Positions 1,181 to 59,486 of a DNA stretch of 64,000 nt are shown here, in pieces (the first letter of the stretch is position 1; the number at the start of each line of letters is the position of its first letter). The notes under the pieces were generated by a model that made no database searches, had not been told where the DNA came from, and was given only the letters and a program-made list of their open reading frames with translations. The translations under genes were made by a program, and so were the position numbers. The stretch lies in NCBI GenBank assembly GCA_051530055.1, contig CM121341.1, forward strand, positions 7,914,784 to 7,978,783. Direction: 5' to 3'. The stretch is from Neoechinorhynchus agilis (Eukaryota > Animalia > Acanthocephala).

Positions 1181-1353
1181 GGATTTTGTAGAGAGCTTTG
1201 GGAAGATGTTTGGATATAAGGACACGAAAAATACATGGTTAACCCGTTCATTTGCGAAAAGTCGTAAAACAACACGAAAAATACTTGCACGATTCGTTCG
1301 TTTGACATCTTTTGGCAAAAGTTGCGAAGAAATCGGGGCATCCTCCGTGTGGG

Positions 1354-9851: not shown

Positions 9852-10471
9852 AATAATGATTAATTTCTTTACAATGTTCAACAAGTATAAATGTTATCTT
9901 TTACAAGAAGCTGCTGATTGTGTTCATTGGGCGAAAACATATTTGGGACGAATCGCCGACTTTCGGTTGTAGATGTGGTTGGGAATGTCTCTAATATTTA
10001 TCCTTAGCCGTCTCCGCCACACTCCATGTCGCTTTGCTTACCGTTCCTTTATGTTGTTCGGATCGTACATCCAATAGGAAATATTCTACACCCTGTGATG
10101 TTCACAGCTCGGAGATTTGGTCCTTTTGGACTTCTACCTTTGAGATATTATTGAGGTCTTATGAAATGATTCGTGGTGATGATCACCTTCTATTGATCGA
10201 TTTATCTCTAACTGATAAGCTCAGAATAAGTCTCGAATTTCCAAGGATTTTGTCTTCTCACATTCTTGCAATCTTTTTCTCAATTGCTGTCGGTTATGCA
10301 TTATTCACGTGTTATCATTTGCCTGAAAGCAAAATGTGTGGATCTTCTCAAGACGGAACTCGTACAGTCGATGATCAAGATTATTCATCAAAGTGGAGAT
10401 TCCATTAAAGACACGAAAGATATCTTCCATTAGAATACTTATTTTCTGTATCTTTTTTTATATTGTTCTCA

Positions 10472-11599: not shown

Positions 11600-12700
11600 A
11601 GGTGTCACGGCGTAAAACATCGATTCTTTGACCACTGTAAAATTAGAGGAAATTTGATTAAACTTTCCTTTCTATCGAAAATTGTAAGAAGACTATTTCT
11701 TCTCCCAAACACACCGATTTTGGTAGGGGAATCGAATGAAATCGTGCTTAAAAACCTTAACCAAACGGTGATGAGTTTGTACGCATCTCTCCGGATCCTC
11801 AGATGCCTCCCGAAAAGGCGGTACTCGTCATTGAGTTTCCTCTTCCCTTCAACGAGGTATTTCGTCCTCCGAGTCCCGCTTCCCGGGAGATATCTGAGAA
11901 TCCGGATGGATGTACAAAACTTACAACTATACGGCCTTGGGGCATTGAGCGCAGACCAGCACTTCCCAGACCGAAATCGGTGGACTGCGGGTGTCCATAA
12001 TTCAGCCGTGTTTGAGGGAGAAATAGACATCTTTTACTTCTCGTAAGCCCGGAAACGATTTCTTCCACTTCTCAACAACAAATTATCGCCCGGTCCAAAT
12101 GCTCGGCAATGGATGCCCTACTTCGCATTTATGACATGCTTCTACCCAAGTCGAGAATAATCTTTCCATGTCACCCGTCTCATTCAACTTGATTCATCAA
12201 AAGCACTCGACAATTTACCTCCTCAAACGTCTCCACCATTTAGGAATCCTTTCATCCGATCTCTCCAAATTTTACTTCTGCTTTATTTTATACTCCCTCG
12301 CCTACAGTTATTCCGTCTTTTGCAATCAAAACGCCTCGCAACCCTTGAAACACAATTTCGACCACACACATCGATCCTTTTTCTCATGAGCACAACAATC
12401 GTAATCCTAATTCGTTTCATCCTCCCTCAACCTCGCACTTCCCTGCGCCTAAGCTCCTCTGTCCATACTGCCAAATCTTCTCGGATATCAGAACTTGAAA
12501 TGAACCTGAGGAAAGACCAACCTTAAAAGCACTCTTGCAAACAATAACCACCAATTCCCACAAGAATGGACCTTCCAACCAGACCGAACCCGTAATCCAC
12601 TCCATAATCAACAACCGCATTCATTTATCCTATCAGAACTCGAGTGTCTACGAGGAATCACCTCTTCTTTGTGCATTAACAATTAAACTTGTTATTAGTA
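11600..12700. mobile_element. Composite of LINE remnants: minus-strand post-RT C-terminal fragment (about 11700-12050), then plus-strand RT fragment and 3' tail
   Basis: Plus strand: SAMDALLRIYDML, HVTRLIQLDSSKALD, LLKRLHHLGI (same family as the 1-1180 RT). Minus strand: NTAELWTP...LRIRRDAYKLITV, resembling a CR1/L2 ORF2 C-terminus. Confidence 0.6.
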
Positions 12701-17215: not shown

Positions 17216-17821
17216 ATGCCTCCTCGTGACCAATTGAATCGTAAGCCTAGCAGCCGACGAGCAAACCGGAACAGCGGAGATGTTTTTGAGGCTGAGCGGA
17301 TAATTGACCATCGATTTGTGGACGACGGAGGTCTTCAAGTTTTAATGAAATGGAAAGGATATGGAACTGGTTATAATACATGGGAGCCGATTGAGAATAT
17401 ATTATCTTCGGATCTTTTAGACAGTTATTTGGATGAACTCGGTGGTAGTGGAGAAGTGAGTGTTGATGAGCTTGATAGGATTTGGAAGGGAGCTGGACGA
17501 GTCAATAGGCCTCTAATGGAAGCGGACGACCGTGATTCGCCAGAACCTCAAGTGGTTCGACGATCAGCTCGGATTGATAGACGGCGACGAGTAATCAATG
17601 ATCAAACCAGTGAAGAGTCCGACGAGTCTACAAAGATTGTGAAGGTCAAGCGGAGAAGGGGAAGACCTTCGTTTGCTCAAAAACGGAAGGATAGTATTGT
17701 TAATTGTTATGGAGCTGAGTTTGTTACGAAGATTCGGATAACCGATGTGGATATGGGTAAGACTACTTGTACGTTCATCGAATGTACTCAAAGGGAAGGA
17801 TTTCTTGACAAACATGTTTAA
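17216..17821 (+). CDS. Polycomb/CBX-like protein 1: chromodomain + AT-hook-like + Pc box, intronless
   Basis: VFEAERII..LMKWKGYGTGYNTWEPIENI; RRRGRPSF; IRITDVDMGKTTCTFIECTQREGFL matches the Pc/CBX C-box pattern ITD....TVTF.E....EGFF. Confidence 0.9.
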   Translation: MPPRDQLNRKPSSRRANRNSGDVFEAERIIDHRFVDDGGLQVLMKWKGYGTGYNTWEPIENILSSDLLDSYLDELGGSGEVSVDELDRIWKGAGRVNRPLMEADDRDSPEPQVVRRSARIDRRRRVINDQTSEESDESTKIVKVKRRRGRPSFAQKRKDSIVNCYGAEFVTKIRITDVDMGKTTCTFIECTQREGFLDKHV

Positions 17822-19937: not shown

Positions 19938-22810
19938 TCATTGATTTGACGACGACGATGCAGGATGGAGTTTGTACCAGCGACTAACTCCATCAATCAA
20001 TTTGGAGTCTGAAAAATGTGAGTACAAAATGTTCCATCGCACTTTAAAATAAACCTGATAGCTGGATGTGTGTGATGCCGATAAAATCATTTTTCGTTAT
20101 TCTGTCATAATCCCAAACAGAAATCTCCAATGTTTTGTACTGTAGTTCATCCTGATGAATGTTACAAAAGACGAACATTTCATTCCACGCAGGATTCAGA
20201 GTTCGTGGTACATATCTAGTTTTTCGCTTGTTGTCTTTTTCTCGCCCTGGAAGTAAATAAAGCTTCACATAGGGGTCCGAAAGTCCATTTGAATCTCGTG
20301 GTAGAAGTCCTTTGGCTTGTACTATTTTAACATGAAGTTCTTGTTCTTTGATGCAATGGGTTAAGACCGCTTGAATTGCTCCTCTTGATAGATTCATTTT
20401 ATCAACTCCGTGTGTTCGACTATGTCTCAATGTCTTTATTCGCTTAATTTCATCATCTTTCATTGTAGTGAGGCGAGAAGTGCTTCTTGAACGCATTAAT
20501 TGGAAATTCGTGGGGATCAGTGAACTTCTCGATACACAATCTGAAACATTGTCTTCAATCGGGCTTGTAATGAGCGTTATTTGTGGATTCTGAACAGTGT
20601 CGGAACTTGTCTCCACCTTTACTAAATCGCATTGATTGAACTCTACACAACAAATTAAGTTGATATCGATCGCTCAGGTAAAAACTACGGATCCCACCTT
20701 CCTTCGAATGCTGCCGAACAGGTTCGCTATGTGCAATACTATTCTCTGATATTGCCCGAGGACTTGTTTGTTCACTCGATTCTACTGACAATGAGCTATT
20801 TAATCTGTTGTAGAAATTCGTACGATGCAATCTTAACGAAAAACGAATCACAACTACGTACGATTTAATGAGTAGCTCCGCTTCCCCGTTCGTTTCTCCG
20901 ATAACCTTTTGAACCATATCCGGATTCATTCCACGAATCTTGTGTTCATTCCATTCTATAAGTTCATCGCCTATTTTATGTTCAATCGTTAAAGCTCACG
21001 AGACCGTTTTCGTCTATTTTAAACGATTTGGGGCCGTTGTCGCAAAATTGATTTAATATGCCCATGTATTTTTTTTTAAAAAAAATTCTCCTAATTTGTA
21101 TGTTTCGATTTAATAGCACACAAACAGCGGAAGCTAGGAAAATACGGAAATATATTCAGTTATCGATGGCTCACTATTTTGTCCCCTTTTTCGGAATAGA
21201 GACGTATGGAGCTCTCGGCAGCTCGGCACTCACTCTGCTCCAGGATGTCTCGAAGAAATTGATAGAAAAGACCGGAGACTCAAGAGCAGGCGTATTCCTT
21301 CGACAAAATATCTCGCTGGCGGTACAATGAGGCAATGCTGTCAGCGTGATGGCGACGGTCGAGGAAGGATAAAAGCTGGAATTCGGCGGGAGGTGGTGAG
21401 TGTGCTTCAAACAGATTGTTTGAATTGTTAAAAATTTTGACAAAAAGCAGAAAAATCGAATTACCAATATTGACAAAATATCTCGCTGCCAGTACAACGA
21501 GGCAATGCTGCCAGCGTGATGGTGACGGTCGAGGAAGGACAAAAGCTGGAATTCGGCGGGAGGTGGTGGGTGTGCTTCAAAAAGATTGTTTGAATTGTTA
21601 AAAATTTTGACAAAAAGCAGAAAAATCGAATTACCAATATTGACAAAATATCTCGCTGCCAGTACAACGAGGCAATGCTGAGCGTGATGGTGACGGTCGA
21701 GGAAGGACAAAAGAAATTTTGACAAAAAGCAGAAAAATCGAATTACCAATATTGACAAAATATCTCGCTGCCAGTACAACGAGGCAATGCTGCCAGCGTG
21801 ATGGCGACGGTCGAGGAAGGACAAAAGCTGGAATTCGGCGGGAGGTGGTTGGTGTGCTTCAAACAGATTGTTTGAATTATTAAAATTTTTGACAAAAAGC
21901 AGAAAAATCGAATTACCGATATTGACACTTGATCTAAGTTGTTCTGCATAACACGATCCGATATCGATACTGACAATCCACGTTCCTAAATACGGCACTC
22001 CAAACTCATCTTTCCCTCGGCAATCCGTCTTTACACCCATACACCACTGGTCTCCTAAATACTTACGATTATTTATTCGTATTTGTGCTGCATTTCTGAC
22101 CCTTTGATTTATGGACAAGTATTCGTCGATATCGTGAATCAAACATTATTGCTTGTGGTGATTGCGCTCGTCGAGATTTCGCAGACCTTTCTTGCTGCGT
22201 AAATAAGAACCAAAAGAGTATGATAGCAACAATGAATGTGCAGTTAGTGATCCCACTTAGAGTTAAAACCGCCATTATCCCCCTTCTTTTCATGCCAACA
22301 CTCGGTTGTGTTTACCTCGTCTAGAGCAGTATTGCTTTGCTTTCGAATGCCATTATACCAGCAATCTTTTTCATCTTCATCAAACTGTTGGAATTGGTAG
22401 TTCAATATTGCCGTCTCAAATGATAATGATTGATGGCAGCAACTTAATTTGCTCTGGTTCTCGTCTGTTGACTCCATTTTTCCGGATTCTAATGAGCGGC
22501 GTGGGGGAAAAATGAAAAGATGAGTGGGAGTTAATGAGAAATCCATTGTCATTCAACCCACCTACTTGTTGAGAAATGTCGACTGTTATTAATTCACTTT
22601 CGTCCTTTTCATTGGGAAATGATTATAGGATGTTCTTCAAATACTCCCTCCCGTCAACTTAGACTTACACTGCTCACATCAACGTAGATTTCATCAATAT
22701 CGGAGGAGTCAGCGCAATCAGACGAACTAATATCCTCATCAAAGGATGCACTAGTTTTTATTCGTTTAGATTTCCCTAAGATTGATATATCACTAAGTGA
22801 GTGAATCATA
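19938..22810 (-). CDS. Piccolo/RIM-family active-zone protein (PDZ + C2), multi-exon, 5' end uncertain
   Basis: PDZ pieces YRRILVHKSKG-DQWCMGVK..LGTWIVSIDIGS..QLRS and DELIEWN..VQKVIGETNGEAELLIK; C2 ELHVKIVQAKGLLPRDSNGLSDPYVKLYLLPG..WDYDR..NDFIG; last exon 20008-19938 DSKLIDGVSRWYKLHP after a 46-nt intron. Confidence 0.8.
21170..21925 (+). mobile_element. CRE-like 3' fragment followed by tandem copies (about 170 bp) of its 3' end, inside a Piccolo/RIM-like intron
   Basis: FVPFFGIETYGALGSSALTLLQDVSKKLIEKTGDSRAGVFLRQNISLAVQ, then about 3.6 copies of gacaaaatatctcgctg...gaattaccaat, one internally deleted. Confidence 0.8.
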
Positions 22811-22991: not shown

Positions 22992-23513
22992 ATGACGAAC
23001 TCAAAAAGAAGCAATAACCGATCATCGTCATCAATCGATGACGGTATCTATAATGCTGAGCGCATTATAAAACATCGGTACCAGAATAACAAACTTCAAT
23101 TTTTCATAAAATGGAAAGGATACGGAAAATCGTATAATACTTGGGAACCCGTGGACAACATCTTCTGTAATGAACTAATCGATGTCTACAACGACGAACT
23201 AGTGATAAAAGGAGAACCGAGACTCCGGGTACGTGCTCGACGAATCAACCAGAATAGAGCTAAATCTGCGCGAAGATCCTCGTGTCTCGATAAGCGAACC
23301 AGTGAGGTTTCGTCTTCTGTTAATGAGAACTCGATTGCGCTTTCAGCCAATAGGAAACGAGGAAGGCCAACGTTCGCACAAAAAAGAATAGACAATATTA
23401 TCACCCACTATGGATTCGATATGGTACCTCATATTAGAATCGTAGATGTTGAACGCAATGGTGTTTGTCAAACGTTCATCGAATGCGATAAACGTGAAGG
23501 ATTCTTTATTTGA
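22992..23513 (+). CDS. Polycomb/CBX-like protein 2: chromodomain + AT-hook-like + Pc box, intronless
   Basis: IYNAERII..FFIKWKGYGKSYNTWEPVDNI; RKRGRPTF; IRIVDVERNGVCQTFIECDKREGFFI. Confidence 0.9.
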   Translation: MTNSKRSNNRSSSSIDDGIYNAERIIKHRYQNNKLQFFIKWKGYGKSYNTWEPVDNIFCNELIDVYNDELVIKGEPRLRVRARRINQNRAKSARRSSCLDKRTSEVSSSVNENSIALSANRKRGRPTFAQKRIDNIITHYGFDMVPHIRIVDVERNGVCQTFIECDKREGFFI

Positions 23514-24135: not shown

Positions 24136-25695
24136 CAGGAATAAATTGTAATCGTTGTAAAAAAAAGTTACTTAAAATATATTTTCTTTGGGAAATAAGC
24201 GAACTTCACATAGATGAGTTTTTTCAAAAATCCTCTTTATCTAAAAAAATCGATTGTAGCCAGATTATCTCTTAAGATTAGATTGCAACCCTACAGACGT
24301 TTTCATAAACGTCGCGGCTCTTCGAAGAAGACGTTGCGTTCACATCAGACCTCAAATCATGGGCTAAAGTTGAATCAAAACGATCTAATTATAAACGGCG
24401 AGTGTAAGTGTATTTTCCTGGAAAGCTTTCATCGAAATCTCGAAAGGAGCTTACAAAGATCGATAATTTTGTTAGTTTCATCAATTAATTCCGGTTGATG
24501 TACTTGTCTTCAAAACAATTGAAGTGCAAACAATCGGAATAAGTGATTTGATAGCCCAAAACGAGCTTCCATATCTCTTTTCCAAAGTCAATAAGATTGA
24601 TTCTTCATAACAATGACAGTCGCAATACAAGTCAAAAAACGGGAAGAGACAAGTATGAAATTTGTCTTACATTTTCGTTGTCATTTAGAAGAAAAACGCT
24701 ATACATTCTCCAAACGACAAATAACTACCCTGTTTATAAGAATGACATCGTTCCTTAAATTATCACAATTTCGAAGCGATTTGTTGACACTACAATCAGA
24801 CGTCCATTAAATGACTCGAGAAACAATGAAGTTTTAAGATATCAATGCGATATCGTCTACAGGTATTGTTTTGCCTTCGTGGGGTTTTCTCTGGCTTGAC
24901 GGTAAGATGATATTTGTGATGTTGTCGGGGATAAAATATCTAGACAGCCTAAACAAGATTGCGGCAATCATCTTCAAGCTGATATCTACAGGTATCACGA
25001 CACCGATCAATTATGTGCTCAGAATCAGTTCTGGGCCATCGTTCGATGTCTAAAATTGTCTAAAAGATTGGCACCCTAGAGAATATAATGTAGTTCCACT
25101 ACTGACTACCTAGACATTCACCCCTTCAAATCTGTCTCTGAAGAATGAATTCTAATCTACTGAGAAATTCTTAGCGATGAAGAACATTAATGATCTAATC
25201 TCAAAAGAGTTTTTAAATAGGAACTTTCAAGAGACCTGTAAAAATGTGGTACTTTGAGAGTTACATCAAAGGCTTTTTTTCATTGCTCCTCTATATTTAC
25301 CCTCAGAAATTAGCAATCTACTTTAATATTCAATGAAAAAATTATACTTGAATACTAGATTCTGGCTCTTCGATTTGCAACTGTTCAGCTTTAAACAAAA
25401 TTTGAATAGACTGAAATCCGTAATATTATTTAACTTCTTGATTGTAATCACATAAAATCTGTATGAACTATCAGCGATGGATAAAGTAGCGATGTTAGAA
25501 ATCCTCTAATAAACACAAATCCTGACCGTCACGCCTTGACATTTCTCCTATGACCGATCTTTGTTTTAGAATGCCAATGAAGGGAAACGAGAACACTCTT
25601 AAATTTCTAAGCCGCGATCTTGTACATTGTGGAATCACCGATTTCATTCATATCTTGACGATTTATACCCATTTTCGATGAGACTGTGGCTCTCG

Positions 25696-26016
25696 AGTAT
25701 AACAATTTTTGGTTAGCATTGTCACCGAAGAGAAACGAGAGCATTTTTGAATTCCTAAGCCGCGATATTCTCAATTAAAGTATCATTTTCTTAGGTTTTG
25801 GAATATAAAGTATAACAATTTTTGGTTAGCATTGTCACCGAAGAGAAACGAGAGCATTTTTGAATTCCTAAGCCGCGATATTCTCAATTAAAGTATCATT
25901 TTCTTAGGTTTTGGAATATAAAGTATAACAATTTTTGGTTAGCATTGTCACCGAAGAGAAACGAGAGCATTTTTGAATTCCTAAGCCGCGATATTCTCAA
26001 TTAAAGTATCATTTTC
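25696..26016. repeat. Tandem repeat, 113-bp unit, about 3 copies
   Basis: agtataacaatt at 25696, 25809, 25922. Confidence 0.9.
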
Positions 26017-26092
26017 TATTGTTGAATAATTGAAGGAATTTGATTGAATCCGATTGTTTAAAAGAACTTGTTCATATCTATTTATGTGTGTG

Positions 26093-26311
26093 TGTTCTTT
26101 TCTGATGACAGAATAATAGATATCGATTTATTAATTCCCATTAAATTTGTTCCGTCTCGTCGGACTTCTTTAGGTTGTTTCGCAAGTTATTAAAGACACG
26201 ATCAACATATTTCAAAACTTGCGAAACAACCTGAAGAAGTCCGACGAGACGGACCAAATTTAATGGGAATTAATAAATCGATATCTATTATTCTGTCATC
26301 AGAAAAGAGCA
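26093..26311. mobile_element. Foldback element, family B (about 97-bp arms, about 27-nt loop)
   Basis: Arms 26093-26189 and 26216-26311 with few mismatches; contains CTGAAGA-A-GTCC..GGAC-CAAA (mutated core); homologous to 41213-41380. Confidence 0.8.
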
Positions 26312-26841: not shown

Positions 26842-27646
26842 ATGCCGAAAAGCAAAGGTCAAATCACGGAAAAGGAACTCCCTTCAACCACCGAGTCGTC
26901 ATCGGTATCAATCGAATCACATCCATTACCCCTACCTGCTGGAGTCTATGAAGTTGAACGGATAATTAAACATCGATACCGAAACGGAAAACTACAGTTT
27001 CATGTGAAATGGAAAGGATGGAGTGCTTCCCACAATACTTGGGAGCCGGATGAAAATATTTTCTGCAGGCATATGATCGATTCCTATCGAGAAAAACTCG
27101 AACGAAAAGGTTAGACTTGTTTTTCTCTCCATAATGATCTATATTCACTGATCAATAGGGAAAACTCTGTATCGACAAAACGGACGAGGACGTCCTCCTT
27201 TATTTCGAAAGACGGAAAATGCCACCAGACGCTCCACACGTCTCAACGCACAACAGCCAATGAAACGTCCATTAGATCCTTTTGTGGACGACGATGAAGA
27301 CGACGATGACACCAGTGCTACCGATGCCGATTTCCAATCACCGACTTCGAGTAGTCTATCGGACGAAACGACTACAAGTCCACCAGTCTCGGAATCCATT
27401 CAAGAACCAAATGAGGAAAAGTCAATAAGATCGTCATTACGCGAACCACCACCTCTTAAGATGAGTAAATCACAACTTCAAATGCGATCTCGGGGTCGAC
27501 CTTCTCTGGCTCAGAAACGAAAAGAAAGTATTATCAATTGTTATACGGAGAAACTATTACCTTTAATCAAAATAACCGATATAACCGTCAATGGAAGTAC
27601 TTGTACGTTTATCGAGTGCAAAAAGCGAGAAGGATTCATTGAATGA
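26842..27646 (+). CDS. Polycomb/CBX-like protein 3: chromodomain + two AT-hook-like motifs + Pc box, one intron
   Basis: VYEVERII..FHVKWKGWSASHNTWEPDENI; 49-nt intron 27110-27158 restores frame (KG-KTLYRQNGRGRPP); RSRGRPSL; IKITDITVNGSTCTFIECKKREGFIE. Confidence 0.9.
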
Positions 27647-44494: not shown

Positions 44495-45840
44495 GGAATA
44501 TTTCTTGGACTTTCTCTACATGGTTGATTTTTTCCGGAATCGAATGAAATCGTGCTTAAAACCTTGAAACAAACGGTAATGAGTTTGTATGGATCCCTTT
44601 GGATTCTCAGAACCCTCCTCCCGAGGAGGAGGAAGGATTCATCAGTGAGTTTTCTCTTCCCTTCAGCAGTAACGCGCAGTTTAAAGATCAGTTCTCATAA
44701 TGGCTTTACAGAAAGACTACTTTTACAAATTTAATAGGCCAGAAAGCATTGATCGATACACTTTTCATTAACTGAGAATCTTAAGAAATTAATACGAAAG
44801 GGAATATCTCTTGGACTTCCTCTACACGGTTGATTTTTTCCGGAATCGAATGAAATCGTGCTTAAAACCTTGAAACAAACGGTAATGAGTTTGTATGGAT
44901 CCCTTTGGATTTTCAGATCTTTCCTCCTGAGGTGGAGGAGGGACTCATCAGTGAGTTTTCCTAGGACTTCATTCAGTTCTCATAATGGTTTTACAGAAAG
45001 ACTACTTTTACAAATTTAATAGGCCAGAAAGCATTGATCGATACACTTTTCATTAACTGAGAATCTTAAGAAATTAATACGAAAGGGAATATCTCTTGGA
45101 CTTCCTCTACATGGTTGATTTTTTCCGGAATCGAATGAAATCGTGCTTAAAACCTTGAAACAAACGGTAATGAGTTTGTATGGATCCCTTTGGATTTTCA
45201 GATCTTTCCTCCTGAGGTGGAGGAGGGACTCATCAGTGAGTTTTCTCCTAGGACTTCATTCAGTTCTCATAATGGTTTTACAGAAAGACTACTTTTACAA
45301 ATTTAATAGCCAGAAAGCATTGATCGATACACTTTTCATTAACTGAGAATCTTAAGAAATTAATACGAAAGGGAATATCTCTTGGACTTCCTCTACATGG
45401 TTGATTTTTTCCGGAATCGAATGAAATCGTGCTTAAAACCTTGAAACAAACGGTAATGAGTTTGTATGGATCCCTTTGGATTCTCAGAACCCTCCTCCCG
45501 AGGAGGAGGAGGAAGGATTCATCAGTGAGTTTTCTCTTCCCTTCAGCAGTAACGCGCAGTTTAAAGATCAGTTCTCATAATGGCTTTGCATAAAGACTAC
45601 TTTTACAAATTTAATAGGCCAGAAAGCATTGATCGATACACTTTTCATTAACTGAGAATCTTAAGAAATTAATACGAAAGGGAATATCTCTTGGACTTCC
45701 TCTACACGGTTGATTTTTTCCGGAATCGAATGAAATCGTGCTTAAAACCTTCAAACAAACGGTAATGAGTTTGTATGAATCCCTCTTGGATTTTCAGATC
45801 TTTCCTCCTGAGGTGGAGGAGGGACTCATCAGTGAGTGAT
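44495..45840. repeat. Tandem array, 285-308-bp units, 5 copies, derived from LINE coding sequence
   Basis: ggaatcgaatgaaatcgtgcttaaaacc at about 44536, 44842, 45127, 45414, 45722; homologous to 11727-11860. Confidence 0.92.
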
Positions 45841-46216: not shown

Positions 46217-49200
46217 ATGGAAATCAACGAACTTCTTGTAGATTATCAGCAACTCGTAGAACAAGGCCATCGCGCAGTCGCCGAATGGCTCAAGCAAGTT
46301 TCCCACTACAGCCAGGAATCTTACGACGAGACAGCTAATCGTATACAGCATCAGGGTCACATTAGAGCTATTCTGAGAAACCTGATTCAGCTTATCGATT
46401 CAGATCTCGGAAATGTATTCCACCATCTCATATCTACAAGCATTTCACAACTACTTAGAAATCACGACTCCATGCTTTTATTGGACGTAATCAATAAATG
46501 CAATAAGACAATCGAAAAATCCAAGTATAAAATGTAAGCACGGAAACATTAAGACTGTAAAAATTCAAAACTAGTTTAATAGATGCGCTCTTACAGTACT
46601 TGTTAATGTCTACCAATATCTCAATCGATCCGCTGGTCACTCGTCTGAAGAAACGGTTTCTATTTGTTCAAAAATATTCTATTCTGGCAAACTTGGTTGT
46701 GATTGTGTGAGTTACTTTCATTAATAATGGGGTTTTTTCAAACTTGTTTTAGTCGATGCAATCAATGCTAAAATCTTCAAGGTTTGCTCAATTGTAATTG
46801 AGGAATCAAATGCACGCAATCGTTTAATTCACCAATCAATTCTTAAAATGGTCCAAAGAGCGCTGAGTAGCCCAAAAGAGTGTTTTGGAATTCTCGATTC
46901 CGTGGCTCAAACTTTATGCAACCTTGTGAAATCCAATTCGTCCCTCCTGGTTTCCACGGATTTGGAAAAAATGATCTTTATCTTATTGGATTCAGTTGCG
47001 TTCTCGGTTTGGACCGAAGATAGTGGATCCAAATGGATTTCCATTTCAGAGTCATTGGCTAGCCTCTGCTTGTCCAAAAAAGGTGGAAATATCGAAGGTG
47101 AGAACTGTCATAAATCTATTCTTGTGCTGACTTAAATTTTCGGAAATAGAATCGCTCAAGTATGTCAGTGATACTCTGCTTCTATATGCCAATAAGAAGA
47201 AACCATTACAACAATCGACTAATAATACAAAAGTCGCCAACCAAGTTACAATGTTGTCGTTGGTAAGGAAAGCTTGCGACTCAAATAAGTTGTTTTTTGG
47301 CGTAACAATTAAAATGATTTTATTTTAAATTCGGCACACGAGTAGATCTCAGTACTTCCCGGACTCCTTTCCCTCAATTGAAAAAACTAACCTGTTTACT
47401 AGTCTAAAATGAGGACTTAATTACACAATAATTTCCAGTTTGTCTTTTTGAATTAAATTAGTGAATAAAATATAAAAAGCTTTTTGCAGGGATTTAGTTT
47501 TATCAGAATAGGATCAGGCCTGATATTTAGTGCCCTCGCTTTTAAAGAGATTAAAATAAATTTCATTGTTAAAAAATAAAAAATTTATTGGCTGGAAAAT
47601 GAGGAGAATAATACCAGATTTTAAGGGGACTTCGATTTGGGAACGATGACCTTTTTTAAAATGTTCTCAAGTTTTTTAATAAAATGATTGAAAAAGGGCA
47701 ATCGAAATTCAGGAAGACGTCCCTTTCCAAAGAAACATAATGAACCTCCTAAAAGCGTAATTAAAATTCTATAAATATAATTAAAAGTGAGCGCTTTATA
47801 AAATATTCCAGAGAGCGAGGAATTAATAAAAAAAACGTTGCCTATTTGATGGAAAATTTATGCCAAGAATCTTGTGAGCGTTTATCACAAGGTTGTTAAA
47901 GTGTTTAAGTGCGGTTTTAATACTTTCACTTTAATTTCTTCGTGCCAGAAAACAATCAAAATGAATAATTTTAATCTTCAAACACTCAAATAAGTGCTCA
48001 GTTTAATTTTCGATTTGTTTCGTCCACTTACTGCTCGATTTGTTCATAAAAAATATCAAGAAAATCCTCAATTTTAAGTCCGTCGCCCATTAACTTAAAA
48101 AATATGGGTCTTTGTGGGTTTTCGCCTTCAATTTTTTTAAGAATGAATGCGTTTGCTGCCAGAAAACAATCAAAATGAATAATTTTAATCTTCAAACACT
48201 CAAATAAGTGCTCAGTTCAATTTTCGATTTGTTTCGTCCACTTACTGCTCGATTTGTTCATAAAAAATATCAAGAAAATCCTCAATTTTAAGTCCGTCGC
48301 CCATTAACTTAAGAAATATGGGTCCTTGTGGGTTTTCGCCTTCAATTTTTTTAAGAATGAATGCGTTTGCTGCCAGAAAACAATCAAAATGAATAATTTT
48401 AATCTTCAAACACTCAAATAAGTGCTCAGTTTAATTTTCGATTTGTTTCGTCCACTTACTGCTCGATTTGTTCATAAAAAATATCAAGAAAATCCTCAAT
48501 TTTAAGTCCGTCGCCCATTAACTTAAGAAATATGGGTCTTTGTGGGTTTTCGCCTTCAAATTTTTTTAAAAATGAATGCGTTTGCTGCCAGAAAACAATC
48601 AAAATGAATAATTTTAATCTTCAAACACTCAAATAAGTGCTCAGTTTAATTTTCGATTTGTTTCGTCCACTTACTGCTCGATTTGTTCATAAAAAATATC
48701 AAGCAATCCTCAATTTTAAGTCCGTCGCCCATTAACTTAAGAAATATGGGTCTTTGTGGGTTTTCACCTTCAATTTTTTTTTAAAATGAATGCGTTTGCT
48801 GCCAGAAAACAATCAAAATGAATAATTTTAATCTTCAAACACTCAAATAAGTGCTCAGTTTAATTTTCGATTTGTTTCGTCCACTTACTGCTCGATTTGT
48901 TCATAAAAAATATCAAGCAATCCTCAATTTTAAGTCCGTCGCCCATTAACTTAAGAAATATGGGTCTTTGTGGGTTTTCGCCTTCAAATTTTTTTAAAAA
49001 TGAATGCGTTTGCTGTTAGAAAACAATCAAAATGAATAATTTTAATCTTCAAACACTCAAATAAGTGCTCAGTTTAATTTTCGATTTGTTTCGTCCACTT
49101 ACTGCTCGATTTGTTCATAAAAAATATCAAGAAATCCTCAATTTTAAGTCCGTCGCCCATTAACTTAAGAAATATGGGTCTTTGTGGGTTTTCGCCTTCA

Positions 49201-52200
49201 AATTTTTTTAAAAATGAATGCGTTTGCTGCCAGAAAACAATCAAAATGAATAATTTTAATCTTCAAACACTCAAATAAGTGCTCAGTTTAATTTTCGATT
49301 TGTTTCGTCCACTTACTGCTCGATTTGTTCATAAAAAATATCAAGAAAATCCTCAATTTTAAGTCCGTCGCCCATTAACTTAAGAAATATGGGTCTTTGT
49401 GGGTTTTCGCCTTCAAATTTTTTTAAGAATGAATGCGTTTGCTGTTAGAAAACAATCAAAATGAATAATTTTAATCTTCAAACACTCAAATAAGTGCTCA
49501 GTTTAATTTTCGATTTGTTTCGTCCACTTACTGCTCGATTTGTTCATAAAAAATATCAAGAAAATCCTCAATTTTAAGTCCGTCGCCCATTAACTTAAGA
49601 AATATGGGTCTTTGTGGGTTTTCGCCTTCAAATTTTTTTAAAAATGAATGCGTTTGCTGCCAGAAAACAATCAAAATGAATAATTTTAATCTTCAAACAC
49701 TCAAATAAGTGCTCAGTTTAATTTTCGATTTGTTTCGTCCACTTACTGCTCGATTTGTTCATAAAAAATATCAAGCAATCCTCAATTTTAAGTCCGTCGC
49801 CCATTAACTTAAGAAATATGGGTCTTTGTGGGTTTTCGCCTTCAAATTTTTTTAAAAATGAATGCGTTTGCTGCCAGAAAACAATCAAAATGAATAATTT
49901 TAATCTTCAAACACTCAAATAAGTGCTCAGTTTAATTTTCGATTTGTTTCGTCCACTTACTGCTCGATTTGTTCATAAAAAATATCAAGAAATCCTCAAT
50001 TTTAAGTCCGTCGCCCATTAACTTAAGAAATATGGGTCTTTGTGGGTTTTCGCCTTCAATTTTTTTAAAATGAATGCGTTTGCTGCCAGAAAACAATCAA
50101 AATGAATAATTTTAATCTTCAAACACTCAAATAAGTGCTCAGTTTAATTTTCGATTTGTTTCGTCCACTTACTGCTCGATTTGTTCATAAAAAATATCAA
50201 GAATCCTCAATTTTAAGTCCGTCGCCCATTAACTTAAGAAATATGGGTCTTTGTGGGTTTTCGCCTTCAAATTTTTAAAATGAATGCGTTTGCTGAGAAA
50301 ACAATCAAAATGAATAATTTTAATCTTCAAACACTCAAATAAGTGCTAGTTAATTTTCGATTTGTTTCGTCCACTTACTGCTCGATTTGTTCATAAAAAA
50401 TATCAAGAAATCCTCAATTTTAAGTCCGTCGCCCATTAACTTAAGAAATATGGGTCTTTGTGGGTTTTCGCCTTCAAATTTTTTTGAAAATGAATGCGTT
50501 TGCTGCCAGAAAACAATCAAAATGAATAATTTTAATCTTCAAACACTCAAATAAGTGCTCAGTTTAATTTTCGATTTGTTTCGTCCACTTACTGCTCGAT
50601 TTGTTCATAAAAAATATCAAGAAAATCCTCAATTTTAAGTCCGTCGCCCATTAACTTAAGAAGTATGGGTCTTTGTGGGTTTTCGCCTTCAAATTTTTTT
50701 AAAAATGAATGCGTTTGCTTTTAATTTTTTTAAACGAGTGCTTTTACAATTGATTACCGTGCAATTTAGACACTAACAAGACTTTCCAATCGTATATTTG
50801 AAAACATGGAATTCTATCAACTTCTACCCTTGCTTGTTTCCACTTGTCTCAGTATCGGCAAATCTTGCTCAAACAACGCCCTAAGCCGTCATTCTCGGAA
50901 ATGCGTTAATTTCCTCTTCAATCACATTATTTACCGCTATAATGGGATCGACAATTGTTCGCGATTGATTGCTCTAGTAACCGAGAGTACAGTGAAGGCA
51001 GCGTTGATGATTGTTGCAAATCAAAATCGCAGATCTGGTACGGATTCCAAGGAGCTAAGAAGTTCTCAAAACATCCTTCTTTGTTCAATCGGGCAACTCG
51101 CTAGACTCGTAATTGAAGTAGACGACAACATTGCTAAAGTTATCGATGATACATCAATTGGGTTTCTACACACAATTCAGACTATTTTACAAACGAGAAC
51201 TCGTAGCATTCAACTTTCAGCTGCTAATCTTGTTTGGGAGATTACTAAAGTCGTTCCGAATGCAATCAAGACTCTCGTTATGAAACAATGGCTTCCACGT
51301 TTGGATTCAAGTGGAGAACGAGAAGGTTATTCTTATTGCTCGGCTGCAGCTATTTACGCGAATAAAGAAACTCGTGCCTTTCCTCAGGGTGCAATTGAGG
51401 TTTGATATGCTTTTTCGATAAAATGAACTTAAAACAATTCTCATCTGATAGGTTGCTCATTCGATCGCACAAGATTTGATAAAAGCACAACGGTGTTTGA
51501 AACCGGACCAAAGGAAAGCATCGTCCATTCATTCTGGATGGGTATTAATTTCCTCAACCGTGGACCACCTCCTCCTTCAAAAGTTGGTAAAACTTATTGT
51601 GAACCCTTTTTTTTGATTTTACAAAAAGCGACGAGAACTTCACGATGAATGGGAATTTCTTAACTTCAGAACAAGCAATATCCGCTGTTGTTGATCTTAT
51701 AGAACAAGACTTCCTTTTTGGTATGAAAAATTTCGATTGTATGACTTTGATTGGAAAACTTGGAGCTCTTACATGTAAGTTGTTGACAGTTAAGCGAACT
51801 TGTTGTTTTTGAACAAAGCAAACAAAAGTGAAGCTTTATCGCACAATTGGCTTCAACCAAGGTCGTCAAAGTGCACATCGTCCTAGTCAAAAAAAAGAAA
51901 TAGTTTTTGCAATTATTATGGTTTTTGCTTAAAGACGTTCTGTGAACCTCGTCGGGTTCATCATCTGTTCTAAAATACAAGTGGATAAGTGTATAACTGA
52001 TAATGAACCAAACGAGGTTCACAGAACGTCTTTTTAATCGAAATAATCATTTACCGCTCGGTTGTAGACTTCTAACCATAATAATTCTCTAATCACATTC
52101 CACCCCCCCCGGTACCTCACATATCGACATTTTTGAAATAGTTTTTAAATTTTAATAGTTCGACAACAATTGGAATTAGATTTTTTGAAACATGCAATAA

Positions 52201-55200
52201 TGATTAAATCTGTCTTTATTCTTTTTAGGCTATAAAACTATTATTGAGCACAATATCTTCCCCAAAATCACATCCAATCGCCGAGTTGTCGTTTCGAAAG
52301 CATTATCTTATCTTATGGCATACAACGAGTTATCTTTTTTACCACAACCAGCACCGATTGATGACCGAACTCAGTACCTCCGCAGTCTATTTGAACTTCG
52401 ACTACTACAAGTCCTTCGTCTTCAAATGAGCTTTCATAAACTTTCAGGTAAGTTCATTAAAGAGCAAATTTACGCCTTTTGAATTTAATTCCAATAGTTA
52501 CAGTAAAGAAATGGATTCAAAACCGCTTGTTAATCAACGTCCTATTAGGTCCGTTGACAGACGAAGCTCTCATCTTACAGTCTCCTGAAGCTCAAGGGGA
52601 CTGTGCTCTTTGTATTCAAACTGAAATCTATGCCAATATCCTCCCCGTAAATTCTCGTGTCCTTTCATCTATTGATTCATCGTTAATTAGTCTTGAAATA
52701 AGTCAGAGGTTCTTGTTCTAGTTTAATGATTAAGAATCTATGGCAAAGACGAGTCCGAAAGGGATATGTACAACTTTGTAGATAGTGGAAATCACCACAG
52801 TGTCCTTATGGATATATCGTTTAATTCGGCTCAGTTGTTATGTCAAATGGCGAATTATAAATGTGATGCTTTAAATGATATATGGATAGAAGTATTGAAG
52901 ATGCAGAATCTTAAGTCATCAATCTCTGACTCTAATGAAAAATATCCGGTTCTGTGGATGGCTTGTGTAATTGTTGAACGAATGCGATTCGACGATTCTA
53001 TCGATTGCCGGTCGCTTGAAACTGCTCTAAAGGATGCATTGTTCGATCGTGCTATGGATAATAATGAAAAACTTAGTGTTCGGATGCATTCTGCTAAAGT
53101 CCTTGGAATATTGTGTAGGCGAGCTAAACGACCAACTTGGTTACCAACTCTATGCGAGATTTTAAAACATAAAATTGCTGCCGAGACTGATGGACCAAGT
53201 CGGATTGTTGAGATTTATTCCGTTGCGGTGCTTTATAGGAATTGTAGTGGATACCAAAGGACAGATTGGGATTCAGTTGTAAATCTTTTTATCAACGTCG
53301 TCAAGGTTGAAACCAACATATACGTTCAGGTTTGTAGTCGAATTTTTTAAGCTTTATCTCGTTTCTAAGAATTTGTCTAACACTTTCAAAATTTATCTTT
53401 CTCTCTAACGAACGATTTCTATTCGTTTTTAATGATTATTATTAATATCCATTAACAAAATCGGAATGAAAAAAACCCACACTTTAAAATATTTCAGAAG
53501 CTCGACTTTTAACAAGTTCCATAATCATTTTAAGAAGTTTCAAGTCTCTTAGGACACTTGAAAATAGGCAAAGTTTTACAAAAACAGACGATTTTCATTT
53601 GATATCGCTGATGATGTTCTTTGATTTTACGATAAAAAACTGTTTAGACGTGGGTACTTCGATCTCTCGGTCTAATAATCGACGGTTGCGGTCTAATGTA
53701 CCTTCCTCGTACTTTAAGTATAAAATATTTCAGAAGCTCGACTTTTAACAAGTTCCATAATCATTTTAAGAAGTTTCAAGTCTCTTAGGACACTTGAAAA
53801 TAGGCCAAGTTTGACAAAAACAGACGATCTTAATTTGAAATCGCTGATGATGTTCGTTGATTTTACGATAAAAAACTGTTTAGACGTGGGTACTTCGATC
53901 TCTCGGTCTAATAATCGACGGTTGCGGTTTAATGTACCTTCCTCGTACTTTAAGTATAAAATATTTCAGAAGCTCGACTTTTAACAAGTTCCATAATCAT
54001 TTTAAGAAGTTTCAAGTCTCTTAGGACACTTGAAAATAGGCAAAGTTTGACAAAAACAGACGATCTTAATTTGATATCGCTGATGATGTTCGTTGATTTT
54101 ACGATAAAAAACTGTTTAGACGTGGGTACTTCGATCTCTCGGTCTAATAATCGACGGTTGCGGTTTAATGTACCTTCCTCGTACTTTAAGTATAAAATAT
54201 TTCAGAAGCTCGACTTTTAACAAGTTCCATAATCATTTTAAGAAGTTTCAAGTCTCTTAGGACACTTGAAAATAGGCAAAGTTTGACAAAAACAGACGAT
54301 CTTAATTTGAAATCGCTGATGATGTTCGTTGATTTTACGATAAAAAACTGTTTAGACGTGGGTACTTCGATCTCTCGGTCTAATAATCGACGGTTGCGGT
54401 TTAATGTACCTTCCTCGTACTTTAAGTATAAAATATTTCAGAAGCTCGACTTTTAACAAGTTCCATAATCATTTTAAGAAGTTTCAAGTCTCTTAGGACA
54501 CTTGAAAATAGGCAAAGTTTGACAAAAACAGACGATCTTAATTTGATATCGCTGATGATGTTCGTTGATTTTACGATAAAAAACTGTTTAGACGTGGGTA
54601 CTTCGATCTCTCGGTCTAATAATCGACGGTTGCGGTTTAATGTACCTTCCTCATATTAATGTTACAATGATGCTTTTGATCGGAGTGCTTCTCAATCATT
54701 CGGTCGATTCAACGGTCGACGATGAAAACCGGATAAAGCAGAGTATAATGAGGATACTTGCATCGTGTATAACCCTCATCGGTCCCGAAATCAAGGACTC
54801 AACATGGTCACAATTTAGACACGATACTCGTTTTGTTTGTTCAATGATCATGAGTAGTTCTACTGAAATGGGATTAAGTGATAATATTTCCCATTCAATC
54901 TATCTTTACTGTCTTGAACAACTCCATATTTTTTGTCCTGATGAATTCAATTTACAAGATATCCTTTGTCAGTTGTGGGTTAGTTTTTAGTCAGAAAGTT
55001 ACTATTATCTTTCACACTCTTTTTGTTTTAGATTGGACTTCAAAGTGATGATTTCATTATAAGGTGCAAATCACTTCAGTGTTTAAGACAGTTGTGCCAA
55101 CGAGAAGCCTATTGTGTATCTGATTATATCAGCAAATTGGATAACGATCGTGTGGCTGCACTTGAAGGTTTGTTAACTTCCTCGTGAAAATAAGTTTCAT

Positions 55201-58200
55201 ATTGTCTCATGGAAAAATTATTATTGTTGATCGACAAACTGTTGAAATGAAATTTTTTTTTAAATTATATTATCATTTTGAATAGATAATCCATTGTTAT
55301 TTGTCGATAGGAAAAAATAAATGAAATTAAGATTTTATTGGATATTTCGATCCACTATCTCGGATCCGCGTGAATTCAATCGCTGAAGAAGAGCCGAGAT
55401 AGTGGATCGAAATATCCAATAAAATCTTAATTTCATTTTGAAAAGATAATCCATTGTTATTTGTCGATAGGAAAAAATAAATGAAATTAAGATTTTATTG
55501 GATATTTCGATCCACTATCTCGGATCCGCGTGAATTGAATCGCTGAAGAAGAGCCGAGATAGTGGATCGAAATATCCAATAAAATCTTAATTTCATTTTG
55601 AAAAGATAATCCATTGTTATTTGTCGATAGGAGAAAATGAAATTAAGATTTTATTGGATATTTCGATCCACTATCTCGGATCCGCGTGAATTGAATCGCT
55701 GAAGAAGAGCCGAGATAGTGGATCGAAATATCCAATAAAATCTTAATTTCATTTTGAAAAGATAATCCATTGTTATTTGTCGATAGGAAAAAATAAATGA
55801 AATTAAGATTTTATTGGATATTTCGATCCACTATCTCGGATCCGCGTGAATTCAATCGCTGAAGAAGAGCCGAGATAGTGGATCGAAATATCCAATAAAA
55901 TCTTAATATTTTGAAAAGATAATCCATTGTTATTGTCGATAGGAAAAAATAAATGAAATTAAGATTTTATTGGATATTTCGATCCACTATCTCGGATCCG
56001 CGTGAATTGAATCGCTGAAGAAGAGCCGAGATAGTGGATCGAAATATCAATAAAATCTTAATTTCATTTTGAAAGATAATCCATTGTTATTTGTCGATAG
56101 GAAAAAATAAATAAATTAAGATTTTATTGGATATTTCGATCCACTATCTCGGATCCGCGTGAATTGAATCGCTGAAGAAGAGCCGAGATAGTGGATCGAA
56201 ATATCCAATAAAATCTTAATTTCATTTTGAAAAGATAATCCATTGTTATTTGTCGATAGGAGAAAATGAAATTAAGATTTTATTGGATATTTCGATCCAC
56301 TATCTCGGATCCGCGTGAATTGAATCGCTGAAGAAGAGCCGAGATAGTGGATCGAAATATCCAATAAAATCTTAATTTCATTTTGAAAAGATAATCCATT
56401 GTTATTTGTCGATAGGAGAAAATGAAATTAAGATTTTATTGGATATTTCGATCCACTATCTCGGATCCGCGTGAATTGAATCGCTGAAGAAGAGCCGAGA
56501 TAGTGGATCGAAATATCCAATAAAATTTCATTTTGAAAAGATAATCCATTGTTATTTGTCGATAGGAAAAAATTGAAATTAAGATTTTATTGGATATTTC
56601 GATCCACTATCTCGGATCCGCGTGAATTGAATCGCTGAAGAAGAGCCGAGATAGTGGATCGAAATATCCAATAAAATCTTAATTTCATTTTGAAAAGATA
56701 ATCCATTGTTATTTGTCGATAGGAGAAAATGAAATTAAGATTTTATTGGATATTTCGATCCACTATCTCGGATCCGCGTGAATTGAATCGCTGAAGAAGA
56801 GCCGAGATAGTGGATCGAGATATCCAATAAAATCTTAATTTCATTTTCTCCTATCGACAAATATATTATCATTTGTTGGGTTGTCGAAATAAAAAGTCAA
56901 ACAGTATCCTTGCCATAAAATCGATATAATTTCATGTTTTTAGAGTATTTGTTCCACATGCTCGATCGGGAAAGAGATGAAAAGTTTAAAGAAGAAGTTA
57001 AGGATACACTATATTTACTCCTATTATCCGTCTCACCTCTAACAATGTCCATGTGGATTTCACTTCTATCTCGCATATTAATTTCAAGTGGAGCGATTCT
57101 GAATACTTCTCAAAGTATACAATCGGAAAAGGATAATGATCATGAAGATGACGATAGCGTTCTCAAACGAGACGAATCCAGCATCCATGGTCGGTCAAGA
57201 GAAATTGGAGGGTTTTGTGGATGGAGAAGTCGATCGTTTGCCGCTGAATGTGTACTGGAGCTCCTCGGGGAAGGCCAAATGCCTAAATTAAAAGATCCTA
57301 GCCACTACATGATAGACGAAGCCAAATCTAACCGAAAAGCGAATCCTGATCATTCATATTTGGTTCTACATATTTCTGATTTAATCCGATTGGCATTTAT
57401 GTCGACCACATCGTCGTCCTCCACCTCCGCTGCTCATTATGGGCTACGTATATTGATGGCAATCGTTGATTTGTTTGGAAATGTAAAAGACGAAGACGAG
57501 TATATCCTTAGTCAGCATGATACTCAGATTACAACAGCGATTTATCGCCTTCTCGAATCTTTGAATGAAGAAACGCTTCAGACTATGATCTATGATCTTT
57601 GTGCCAAATGGCTTTGCTCTACCGCTGCGATATCAAAATCAAGACTTTTGAAGGCGTTGTCAGATCGTTTCAGTTCCAAAGAAATACCTGGCGACAGTGA
57701 AGATTCGACAGCCATCAATGATTCCAATCGGATCAAGAACTACTTAGCCATGGTGCTTTTCTGGGCCAAAATGTACCTAAAAAATTCTAATCTTGTCGAG
57801 GACCAGTCAACGTGGCTCTTAACAAAGCTTGGACAACTTTGGGTTGAGACAATAATTGCTATTTATGACAATGATTGTAAATTATTCGCGACTCATCAAC
57901 CAATTGCGATCTTGCTGTGCTCATCAGCTAATCTACTAAAAAGAGGTGGATATAAAAGCGAATTTCATGTTTCAACCTACACGAAAAAACTACTTCACAA
58001 GGCTGTCCTTGTGAACCATACAAAAATCAATTCGAAGGATATTTTCGATATTATTTTAGGTAATAAGATCTTCTCAGTTAATGTAATTTTTCGATGTTCC
58101 AAATCTCATGTAAACTCAACGCTGATCAATAGCGATCATTATAATCTTGAGTGGCTTCGTGCTTTAGCTCGGTTACATAGAGAAACGAGCCCCGATCTTA

Positions 58201-59486
58201 GCTTTAATTTCATCCATAAAAAACCTCAGTTCGGGCAAAATTATGACATCTTCAAAAAAGAAACGATTTCTTTAATTTTTACGCTGAACGAAAAATTCCT
58301 CGGTCCGTTTTTACTTCTATTTTGTCAGATCAGGACGTTGAAGCATTTAGACAGTCAAAAAATCTTTTAAATCATCCTTACTTCTTCGCAGGAAAAACAG
58401 TTCAAATGCTCGATGATATGAACGTGAATAACATCGATACACAATACCAACTCGTTGAAACATTGATTGTCCTGGTGAACGCTCCACAGTCAGCCTTAAT
58501 TGATTACCAATCAGTATTACAACTGATAACATTGGCGCATAGGTTCGATCTTATTCGACATTTGAGTTCATTAACTCGACTTTAGATTGGGAAAGCGATT
58601 CAGGGAAGTTGCCAATGAACTGCTGAACTCAATATTAGGATCTATTGTTCAAAATAAAACTCTGATTTCAAAGGAAGTTGAATCACTTGGTTTCATTGGT
58701 CTTGAACCAATCGGTAAAAACTGTTCGGATTGCGATATCGCGAATGAAATGAAACGAGTTAAGATTTGCCTTGAGATTCGGCAAAATCGCGAATGGAAAC
58801 ACGGCGATGTATTTGAGTCGAAAGTCTTAAATCAGATTCTATCTCTTATAATAGACGAAAGGACATTTAGTGGATCCTACGATGCCCTTGGATATCTATG
58901 TCTAAGGTCTCAGCAATACCTCCTGATCAAAGTATCCAATCAGCTAGACAAAAAACCGAATCTATTCACAAAGGTCGTCATGATTATTCGTTACTGTTCC
59001 AAAGTTCCTAGTGAGGTAGTTGAGAGCATGCGGAGTTGTGGCGAGCGATTACTGCTGTCCGAAGATTCTAAAATTCAATCCCAGTGTCTTTTATCGATTT
59101 CTACTTTGTTTGTTCACGAATGTCAAAGTATGAGACGAACTGTTGGAGCAATGTTTCTTCGGTTCATCGAAACCCTCGAACGAGGAGATAAAATGCAAGG
59201 AATAATGCAGATCTGCGCTCTCGCTTATATTTCCTCCTTTTCTGAGAGGAACAAAAGTATGGATTGGTTTCGCTGCTGTTTTGATCATTGGATCTATTTA
59301 GGGCAAATCCTTATTCAATACATTATCACAAAATTCACATTTTTACAAATACCAACTATGGAAATTAGTATTCGCTATCAAGCTGAATACGAACACGTCC
59401 TAACAAATGCTGAATTGCCAATACAAGGCGCAAGTATTCGTACGAAGCGATCCGTTAGTCCGATTGACCTTAATAAATTCTTGTAA
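46217..59486 (+). CDS. HEATR5: HEAT repeat-containing protein 5 (HEATR5/Laa1), multi-exon with three array-expanded introns
   Basis: N-terminal ELLVD..EWL..KCN; YVQ/TWVLRSLGLIIDGCG; CITLIGPE; CLEQLHIFCP; CLRQLCQREA; LFHMLDRE; WRSRSFAAEC; LVLHISDLIRLAFM. Large introns at about 47270-50769, 53330-54591, 55170-56944. 3' end approximate. Confidence 0.85.
47944..50719. repeat. Intronic tandem array, about 214-bp unit, about 13 copies
   Basis: gccagaaaacaatc at 47944, 48158, 48372, 48587 and onward. Confidence 0.97.
53485..54652. repeat. Tandem array, 236-bp unit, 5 copies, each containing the HEATR5 splice acceptor and 61 nt of exon
   Basis: Unit starts at 53485, 53721, 53957, 54193, 54429; tttag/acgtgggtac acceptor ends at 53647, 53883, 54119, 54355, 54591. 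Confidence 0.95.
55266..56874. repeat. Intronic tandem array, about 157-bp palindromic unit, 10 copies, one hammerhead-like core per unit, 13-bp flanking direct repeat
   Basis: gataatccattg at 55286, 55445, 55605 through 56697; arms of about 45 bp around a 30-nt loop; tatattatcattt at 55266-55278 and 56862-56874. Confidence 0.95.

Follow-up and report, generated by a model that had tools for sequence, protein, structure and literature searches.

How is a splice acceptor chosen when the end of an intron and the start of the following exon stand five times in a row? This question is raised by a HEATR5-like gene of the acanthocephalan Neoechinorhynchus agilis, located in a 64,000-nucleotide stretch of assembly GCA_051530055.1 (contig CM121341.1, forward-strand positions 7,914,784 to 7,978,783). 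The whole stretch is called the window here, and positions are counted from its first letter. Intron 6 of the gene contains a tandem array of a 236-bp unit that carries the 3' splice site together with the beginning of exon 7, and four decoy acceptors precede the real one. The best explanation of the locus as a whole is probably that a recent, non-adaptive array has grown out of local sequence and that the gene tolerates it by splicing to the fifth copy, the one that adjoins the exon.

A preliminary description of the window had put the consequence as an alternative: either the spliceosome skips four acceptors, or much of the transcript is lost to nonsense-mediated decay. This is a valid either/or between two predicted outcomes. 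Such a locus deserves attention in that competing splice sites of identical sequence remove the local signals as variables. The copy that is used then reveals rules of a higher order, such as transcription order, proximity and exon context.

Structure of the array

Over positions 53485-54652, Tandem Repeats Finder (TRF) reports a period of 236 bp, 4.9 copies, 98% matches, 0% indels and a score of 2280. The unit is made up, in this order, of 163 nt of intron tail (...aaaaaactgtttag, with the end ctgtttag), 61 nt of exon and a 12-nt joint, GTACTTTAAGTA. The 23-mer of the exon start, ACGTGGGTACTTCGATCTCTCGG, is found five times, at 53648, 53884, 54120, 54356 and 54592, the step being exactly 236 bp. 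Homology between the copies begins on the left with TAAAATATTTCAG at 53485 and ends on the right after ...CCTTCCTC at 54652. Both the TRF result and the register of the copies bear out the preliminary description, in which the unit spans the intron 3' end, the tttag and the first 61 nt of the exon.

The five copies vary at no more than seven positions. No difference separates copies 3 and 5, and copy 2 has one private difference, while copy 1 has five, one of them a synonymous C/T difference inside the copied piece of exon (hereafter the stub). Copies 2-5 differ at 0-2 positions, and unit position 119 alternates T/A/T/A/T along copies 1-5. The acceptors of all five copies are identical from -27 to +45, and those of copies 2-5 from -44 to +61. 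The same 12-nt filler is present at all four inter-copy joints; it is an imperfect palindrome, TACTT-T-AAGTA, the first six bases of which match exon positions +7 to +12.

An assembler could have inflated a short duplication into such an array, there being in reality a single copy or at least fewer than five. The N. agilis assembly, a MaSuRCA hybrid with Hi-C scaffolding, combines Illumina reads with about 4.2 Gbp of Oxford Nanopore Technologies (ONT) reads, taken from 50 pooled worms, and a very small amount of HiFi (PMC12690905). The identity of copies 3 and 5 also speaks for an artefact, and a second assembly or read set was sought and none was found. However, at 1.17 kb the array is far below the length of the ONT reads that were kept (at least 5 kb; PMC12690905). 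Moreover, ordered differences, with five private to copy 1, one private to copy 2 and the T/A alternation, are unexpected from the inflation of a single copy, and 15 further arrays of like style occur in the same 64 kb. An artefact is on this evidence improbable.

Source of the repeated unit

The gene that contains the array, ACOME3_001897, encodes a protein of 1506 aa (KAL7675631.1), which agrees completely, over the splice junction, with a model spliced by hand. The Pfam family PF20210 (Laa1_Sip1_HTR5 HEAT repeat region) matches its open reading frame (ORF) at 56934-58370 with E 5.1e-20 and 72.6 bits (cut-off 27), and a precomputed Pfam match on the 1506-aa product agrees with this. An exhaustive HMMER search (phmmer) yielded 131 matches at E<=1e-10 besides the protein itself, the best at E 7e-44, with HEATR5A/5B as the names given in the source. 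The start of exon 7, VQ/TWVLRSLGLIIDGCGLMY (a slash marks the splice junction), corresponds to a helix of HEATR5 with the pattern VQxW(A/S)LHxLxLxx(D/E)SxGxM(F/Y). In a pattern search, 58 of 150 listed homologues, animal ones as well as more distantly related ones, carried the helix. Exon 7 itself opens with the last repeat copy, whose exon part (61 nt, 54592-54652) encodes TWVLRSLGLIIDGCGLMYLP. The assignment of this segment to HEATR5, initially made by eye from a conserved motif, is supported by the family match, the homologues and the motif search alike. Word-indexed protein searches with the junction peptide and with a 478-aa ORF returned no match; they are uninformative, HMMER having later found the annotated protein. 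A sequence search of the PDB found no HEATR5 structure, only a chance match to a formin (E 0.09).

The HEATR5B-like locus of the hemichordate Glandiceps talaboti, the one other species compared, contains a 624-nt phase-0 intron (locus positions 25551-26174) within ..SPQVQ/gtaatt...ctatag/AWSLHAL. Its position is that of the VQ/TW site of N. agilis, also in phase 0. Judged by this comparison, the exon sequence and the intron are evidently much older than the repeat. Because the exon motif is ancient and the intron position is common to the hemichordate, the array was copied from the gene and not the reverse. The same two observations led to the rejection of a scheme in which a pre-existing array had been exonised.

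In the same Glandiceps locus, some 20 kb before the real exons, an unspliced stretch (4945-5349) has 59% identity to the motif region and may represent a paralogous copy, processed or partial, within the gene range.

Other identities of the unit were considered and dismissed. blastn found no copy of the unit in the 64-kb window outside the array. A transposon-derived satellite was rejected, as dispersed copies of the unit are absent from the window and part of the unit is ancient coding sequence. No Rfam family was detected in the array at gathering thresholds, the sole match in the window being the tRNA at 1354-1433. A small nucleolar RNA was rejected, for no D box matches the C-box-like TGATGA that precedes the acceptor. 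As independent evidence for the repeat joint, a 57-aa ORF that spans the array and a 116-aa ORF of the exon were sought in a collection of 15 billion proteins and were absent from it.

Origin and expansion

The founding event would have been one tandem duplication of a 224-bp piece of HEATR5 (163 nt of intron and 61 nt of exon), with the 12-nt filler placed at the joint. A single founding duplication is proposed because all four joints carry the same filler. The imperfect palindrome and the match of the first six bases to the exon would be compatible with templated filler from end joining. The resulting 236-bp unit may then have been amplified to five copies, mostly recently, via unequal exchange or replication slippage, part of this amplification proceeding in two-unit (472-bp) steps. 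The outlying copy 1, the near-identity of copies 2-5 and the T/A alternation at position 119 suggest that the first duplication is older, that the growth is recent and that steps of two units occurred.

The array has many neighbours. Sixteen arrays occupy 31% of the bases of the window; their periods run from 84 to 370 bp, their copy numbers from 2 to 25 and their identities from 89 to 100%. Cross-comparison shows that the 16 are mutually unrelated. Six have periods of 156-174 bp, several display a double-period higher order, and those that can be placed against the annotation are in introns or between genes. Most likely, the array of intron 6 is one of many independent young minisatellite-type arrays and has no function of its own. 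The proposal, made at the outset, that arrays arise here from local sequence regardless of gene structure is supported by the uniqueness of the unit in the window, the lack of relationship among the 16 arrays and the conserved motif in the copied exon part.

The genome of N. agilis has 46.2 Mb, of which 31.6% is coding (PMC12690905). Tandem arrays in this compact 46-Mb genome appear to be dense, young and specific to their loci. The main text of the genome paper makes no use of the words 'tandem repeat', 'satellite' and 'intron' (PMC12690905).

Splicing at five identical acceptors

Exact spliced mapping of the 1506-aa protein gives 12 exons, with introns of 52, 46, 454, 50, 47, 1262, 53, 1776, 332, 43 and 45 nt, in order. 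Seven of these 11 introns are of 43-53 nt, and two more, of 48-49 nt, are found in the N-terminal part of the gene; the early remark that introns are mostly of 45-55 nt holds locally. In the deposited model the donor at 53330 (exon end 53329) is joined to the acceptor of copy 5 (54592). The coordinates of these elements and of the copies are collected in Table 1.

The reading frame was translated from each acceptor in the phase given by the upstream exon, which ends in ..NIYVQ at 53329. Copies 1-4 are translated into the 20 shared residues of TWVLRSLGLIIDGCGLMYLP and 26 further codons, and then reach a TAG (46 codons in total). Copy 5 alone is in frame and is open up to the donor at 54979. A donor at C/GTACTT, used after the 61-nt stub, shifts the frame, and so does TAA/GTATAA at 70 nt. 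That only copy 5 continues in frame, that copies 1-4 meet a TAG about 26 codons on and that a c/gtactt donor would shift the frame had been read from the sequence in the preliminary description, and translation of the five copies upholds it. In-frame inclusion of a stub was rejected as impossible, given that 61 and 70 nt both shift the frame; three 61-nt stubs in series meet a TAA in the third (hand translation). Tandem exon duplication with mutually exclusive use was likewise rejected: the copies hold only 61 of the exon's 387 nt, a length indivisible by 3, and behind every decoy acceptor the frame closes with a TAG after 46 codons.

Only two things differ among the five acceptors, namely the distance from the donor (318, 554, 790, 1026 and 1262 nt for copies 1-5) and the sequence beyond +61. 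Since the acceptors are locally identical, local signals cannot distinguish the copies. The same holds for short reads. The upstream exon ends in ...ATATACGTTCAG and is followed by ACGTGGG... in every copy. Past the stub, copy 5 reads ...CCTCATATTAATG (CCTC-ATATTAATG), while the decoys read ...CCTCGTACTTTAAG (CCTC-GTACTTTAAG). RNA sequencing (RNA-seq) reads must therefore reach at least 62 nt beyond the junction to tell the copies apart, and annotators are warned that reads of less than 62 nt past the junction are unassignable to a copy.

Splice sites were scored with a crude matrix derived from 12 local introns, which is too small for the scores in Table 1 to carry weight; the donors of this gene are degenerate.

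Table 1. Coordinates of the HEATR5 elements and of the array, and scores of splice sites (the matrix, of 12 local introns, is too small to give the scores weight)
Feature	Position	Strand	Basis	Score
HEATR5-like gene, annotated as two genes: 273-aa product (46217-47135) and 1506-aa ACOME3_001897 (50806-59486)	46217..59486	+		
Exon 6 of ACOME3_001897, end ...ETNIYVQ, phase 0; donor cag/GTTTGTAG at 53330	52749..53329	+	exact protein mapping	
Intron 6, 1262 nt; 318 nt if the four extra units are removed	53330..54591	+	exact protein mapping	
Unique 5' part of intron 6, 155 nt, upstream of the array	53330..53484	+	copy homology starts at 53485	
Tandem array, 4 full 236-bp units and a final 224-bp copy running into the true exon	53485..54652	+	TRF; register and variant table	
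Decoy exon stub 1 (61 nt), acceptor ctgtttag; differs from the real exon by a single synonymous base (C at 53693); TAG 53786-53788	53648..53708	+		
12-nt junction filler GTACTTTAAGTA	53709..53720; also 53945-53956, 54181-54192, 54417-54428	+	read directly from the sequence	
Decoy exon stub 2, same as real exon start; TAG 54022-54024	53884..53944	+		
Decoy exon stub 3, same as real exon start; TAG 54258-54260	54120..54180	+		
Decoy exon stub 4, same as real exon start; TAG 54494-54496	54356..54416	+		
Authentic exon 7, 387 nt; donor tgg/GTTAGTTT at 54979	54592..54978	+	exact protein mapping	
True acceptor and each decoy acceptor			12-intron matrix	4.3 bits
Second acceptor-like site tctcttag/GA, in every unit			12-intron matrix	6.4 bits
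Candidate donors GTACTT (+62) and GTATAA (+71)			12-intron matrix	below 4 bits
Pseudo-donor at +161			12-intron matrix	about 5 bits
Pseudo-donor at +204			12-intron matrix	6.9 bits
Donor of the real 387-nt exon			12-intron matrix	7.9 bits

In productive mRNA the fifth acceptor would be paired with the donor at 53330. Upstream of it lie four look-alike 3' splice sites, each of which presumably has its own branch-point region and is followed by no more than a 61-nt stub and by donors that score poorly. We infer that the decoys largely lose the competition through exon-context selection, since a complete exon of 387 nt with a good 5' splice site follows the real acceptor alone. Splicing to a decoy would give a stop-containing RNA that is lost, and some fraction of the transcripts may disappear in this manner. 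The gene would still work because, when a tandem duplication crosses a boundary, one copy (in this case the last) invariably stays connected to the rest of the exon.

The annotation was made by BRAKER with mRNA-seq of 74 worms (2x150 nt, PRJNA1223661; PMC12690905). The resulting model fits productive splicing to copy 5; it is silent on the frequency of decoy use. Between the two HEATR5 models, at 47136-50805, lies an array-filled gap that this pipeline left unbridged. Its failure there suggests, although it is no proof, that reads supported the introns of 1262 and 1776 nt.

Several points weigh against this explanation of the locus. The decoys lie nearer to the donor and are transcribed before the real acceptor. 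A human BRCA1 duplication of the same architecture does give an aberrant, stop-containing mRNA (PMC11839443). BRAKER could have chosen the intron ab initio as the one path that stays open, and the copy number is that of a single hybrid assembly (Illumina/ONT), made from pooled worms. It is also conceivable that each unit provides a pseudo-exon of 161 nt and a pseudo-intron of 75 nt.

The early transcription and proximity of the upstream copies, as well as the BRCA1 precedent, are arguments for the view that the decoys win. Most transcripts would then be spliced to copies 1-4 and destroyed, and the allele would be a strong hypomorph or the gene would be in the course of being lost, as many conserved genes have been in acanthocephalans. 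Yet all 12 annotated exons are open over 1506 codons and retain conserved motifs, and the annotation, which had RNA-seq hints, uses copy 5. Such a degree of failure is very unlikely.

Alternatively, the decoys might have been co-opted as a regulator. They would engage splicing factors, and intron retention, or unproductive splicing followed by decay, would set the level of HEATR5. Four exact acceptors do stand upstream of the real one, an architecture like that of decoy splice sites in a large intron (PMC6097662, PMC7373989). However, the near-identity of the copies indicates a recent event that has left no time for selection. The neighbouring introns and intergenic DNA are filled by the same kind of array with unrelated sequence, and the stubs are without a good paired donor by the 12-intron matrix. 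Co-option must be regarded as very unlikely indeed.

If the decoys are tolerated rather than used, as we favour, a more far-reaching proposal is that the spliceosome routinely bypasses four sequence-identical upstream 3' splice sites and that exon context beyond +61, or the downstream donor, decides. This is possible, but we hold it to be rather doubtful. Were it true, branch point, tract, AG and proximity would not decide acceptor choice in N. agilis with its short introns. Because arrays fill about one third of the stretch, many more duplications of splice signals may then exist, and the genome would offer a genome-wide, acceptor-side counterpart to the human F7 minisatellite (see below). 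A five-copy case on the acceptor side, in a gene with introns mostly of about 45-50 nt, would test whether exon context overrides four earlier identical sites.

Annotation of the gene and neighbouring elements

HEATR5 is split in the deposited annotation, apparently by arrays of this kind. The 273-aa product of the first model (46217-47135) aligns colinearly with residues ~43-226 of full-length homologues, and a 214-bp x 13 array (47943-50719) lies inside the gap (47136-50805) that separates it from the second. A likely unannotated continuation of the N-terminal model uses a donor at 47098 and an acceptor at 47150. Two introns near the 3' end also have alternatives. The annotated 332-nt intron (58060-58391) takes out some 81 codons in which the frame of the preceding exon stays open (the ORF 56934-58370 runs through); a 41-nt intron at 58303-58343 would keep the frame. 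An annotated 45-nt intron occurs at 59257-59301, and a hand-built alternative C-terminal model has no intron there. The 1776-nt intron (55168-56943) holds a 156-bp x 10 array (55273-56847), which ends 96 nt before the acceptor; no splice site is copied in this case.

Two further arrays of the window merit mention. The unit of a 285-bp array (44688-45837) is 78% identical over 117 nt to a single copy at 11728-11838, and this array, unlike that of intron 6, seems to be derived from a dispersed repeat. A 170-bp x 2.4 array (21302-21713) lies within the range of an annotated C2-domain gene (19938-22809, minus strand) and is covered by a minus-strand open frame of 322 codons, though its period is not a multiple of three.

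The ORFs 22992-23513 and 27260-27646 resemble an annotated chromodomain gene (17216-17821), with which they have the ends ...RGRPxFAQKR... and ...TCTFIEC.KREGF... in common. Lying in a stretch of 7.8 kb (22.8-30.6 kb) without annotated genes, they may be unannotated paralogues or pseudogenes. At the start of the window, a fragment of a reverse-transcriptase-like ORF (697-1341, minus strand) adjoins a tRNA gene (1354-1433, minus strand, 60.9 bits), and both are beside a 370-bp x 2.1 array. The hypothetical protein ACOME3_001888 of N. agilis matches the KRR1 reading frame (10463-11107) with 100% identity.

Comparison with known systems

Tandem exon duplication is a source of mutually exclusive exons, for example in Dscam-type clusters. 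There, as here, exon-bearing DNA has been duplicated locally, in tandem and inside a gene. The stubs of N. agilis differ in that they lack a convincing donor, shift the frame and lead to an in-frame stop, and no alternative coding exons are possible.

Decoy exons in large introns promote intron retention (Parra et al. 2018, PMC6097662; PMC7373989). The resemblance lies in non-productive splice sites that, from within a large intron (>1 kb), can occupy the splicing machinery in competition with the productive pairing. The decoy exons described have both 3' and 5' splice sites, and their activity was established by reporter constructs, whereas the stubs of N. agilis appear young and are without a convincing donor.

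A pathogenic tandem duplication in human BRCA1 comprises the end of intron 9 (395 nt) and the start of exon 10 (1617 nt); one heterozygous patient carried it, and an aberrant transcript was seen when the RNA was analysed (PMC11839443). As in N. agilis, an intron end and an exon start are duplicated in tandem and a premature stop is predicted. In contrast, BRCA1 has one extra copy with a very long exon part, while N. agilis has four extra copies with 61-nt stubs, which are known from an assembly consensus and in which the gene model still splices productively.

The closest counterpart is the variable number of tandem repeats in intron 7 of human F7, with a 37-bp unit of which the first spans the exon 7/intron 7 boundary (Borensztajn et al. 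2006, PMC1557585). Experiments with 50 constructs demonstrated that the pseudo-sites are silent, and this work led to a scanning model (PMC1557585). In both genes a minisatellite unit spans a boundary, a real splice site stands beside intronic pseudo-sites of identical sequence, and the copy adjoining the exon is used, as demonstrated for F7 and as modelled in the annotation for N. agilis. Indeed, the N. agilis array is arranged head to tail, contains the boundary in its unit and repeats one acceptor sequence, from -27 to +45, five times. Nature offers in both genes a test of how splice sites are chosen. In F7 it is the 5' splice site that is multiplied, with pseudo-sites downstream, whereas in N. 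agilis it is the 3' splice site, with pseudo-sites that are upstream and transcribed earlier. Furthermore, the unit is one of 37 bp in F7 and of 236 bp in N. agilis, the latter with 163 nt of intron, presumably including the branch-point region, and 61 nt of exon. The N. agilis array is probably not a decoy exon in the defined sense, and it is not an exon duplication able to give alternative exons. It is the acceptor-side mirror image of F7, and precedents are known on both the donor and the acceptor side.

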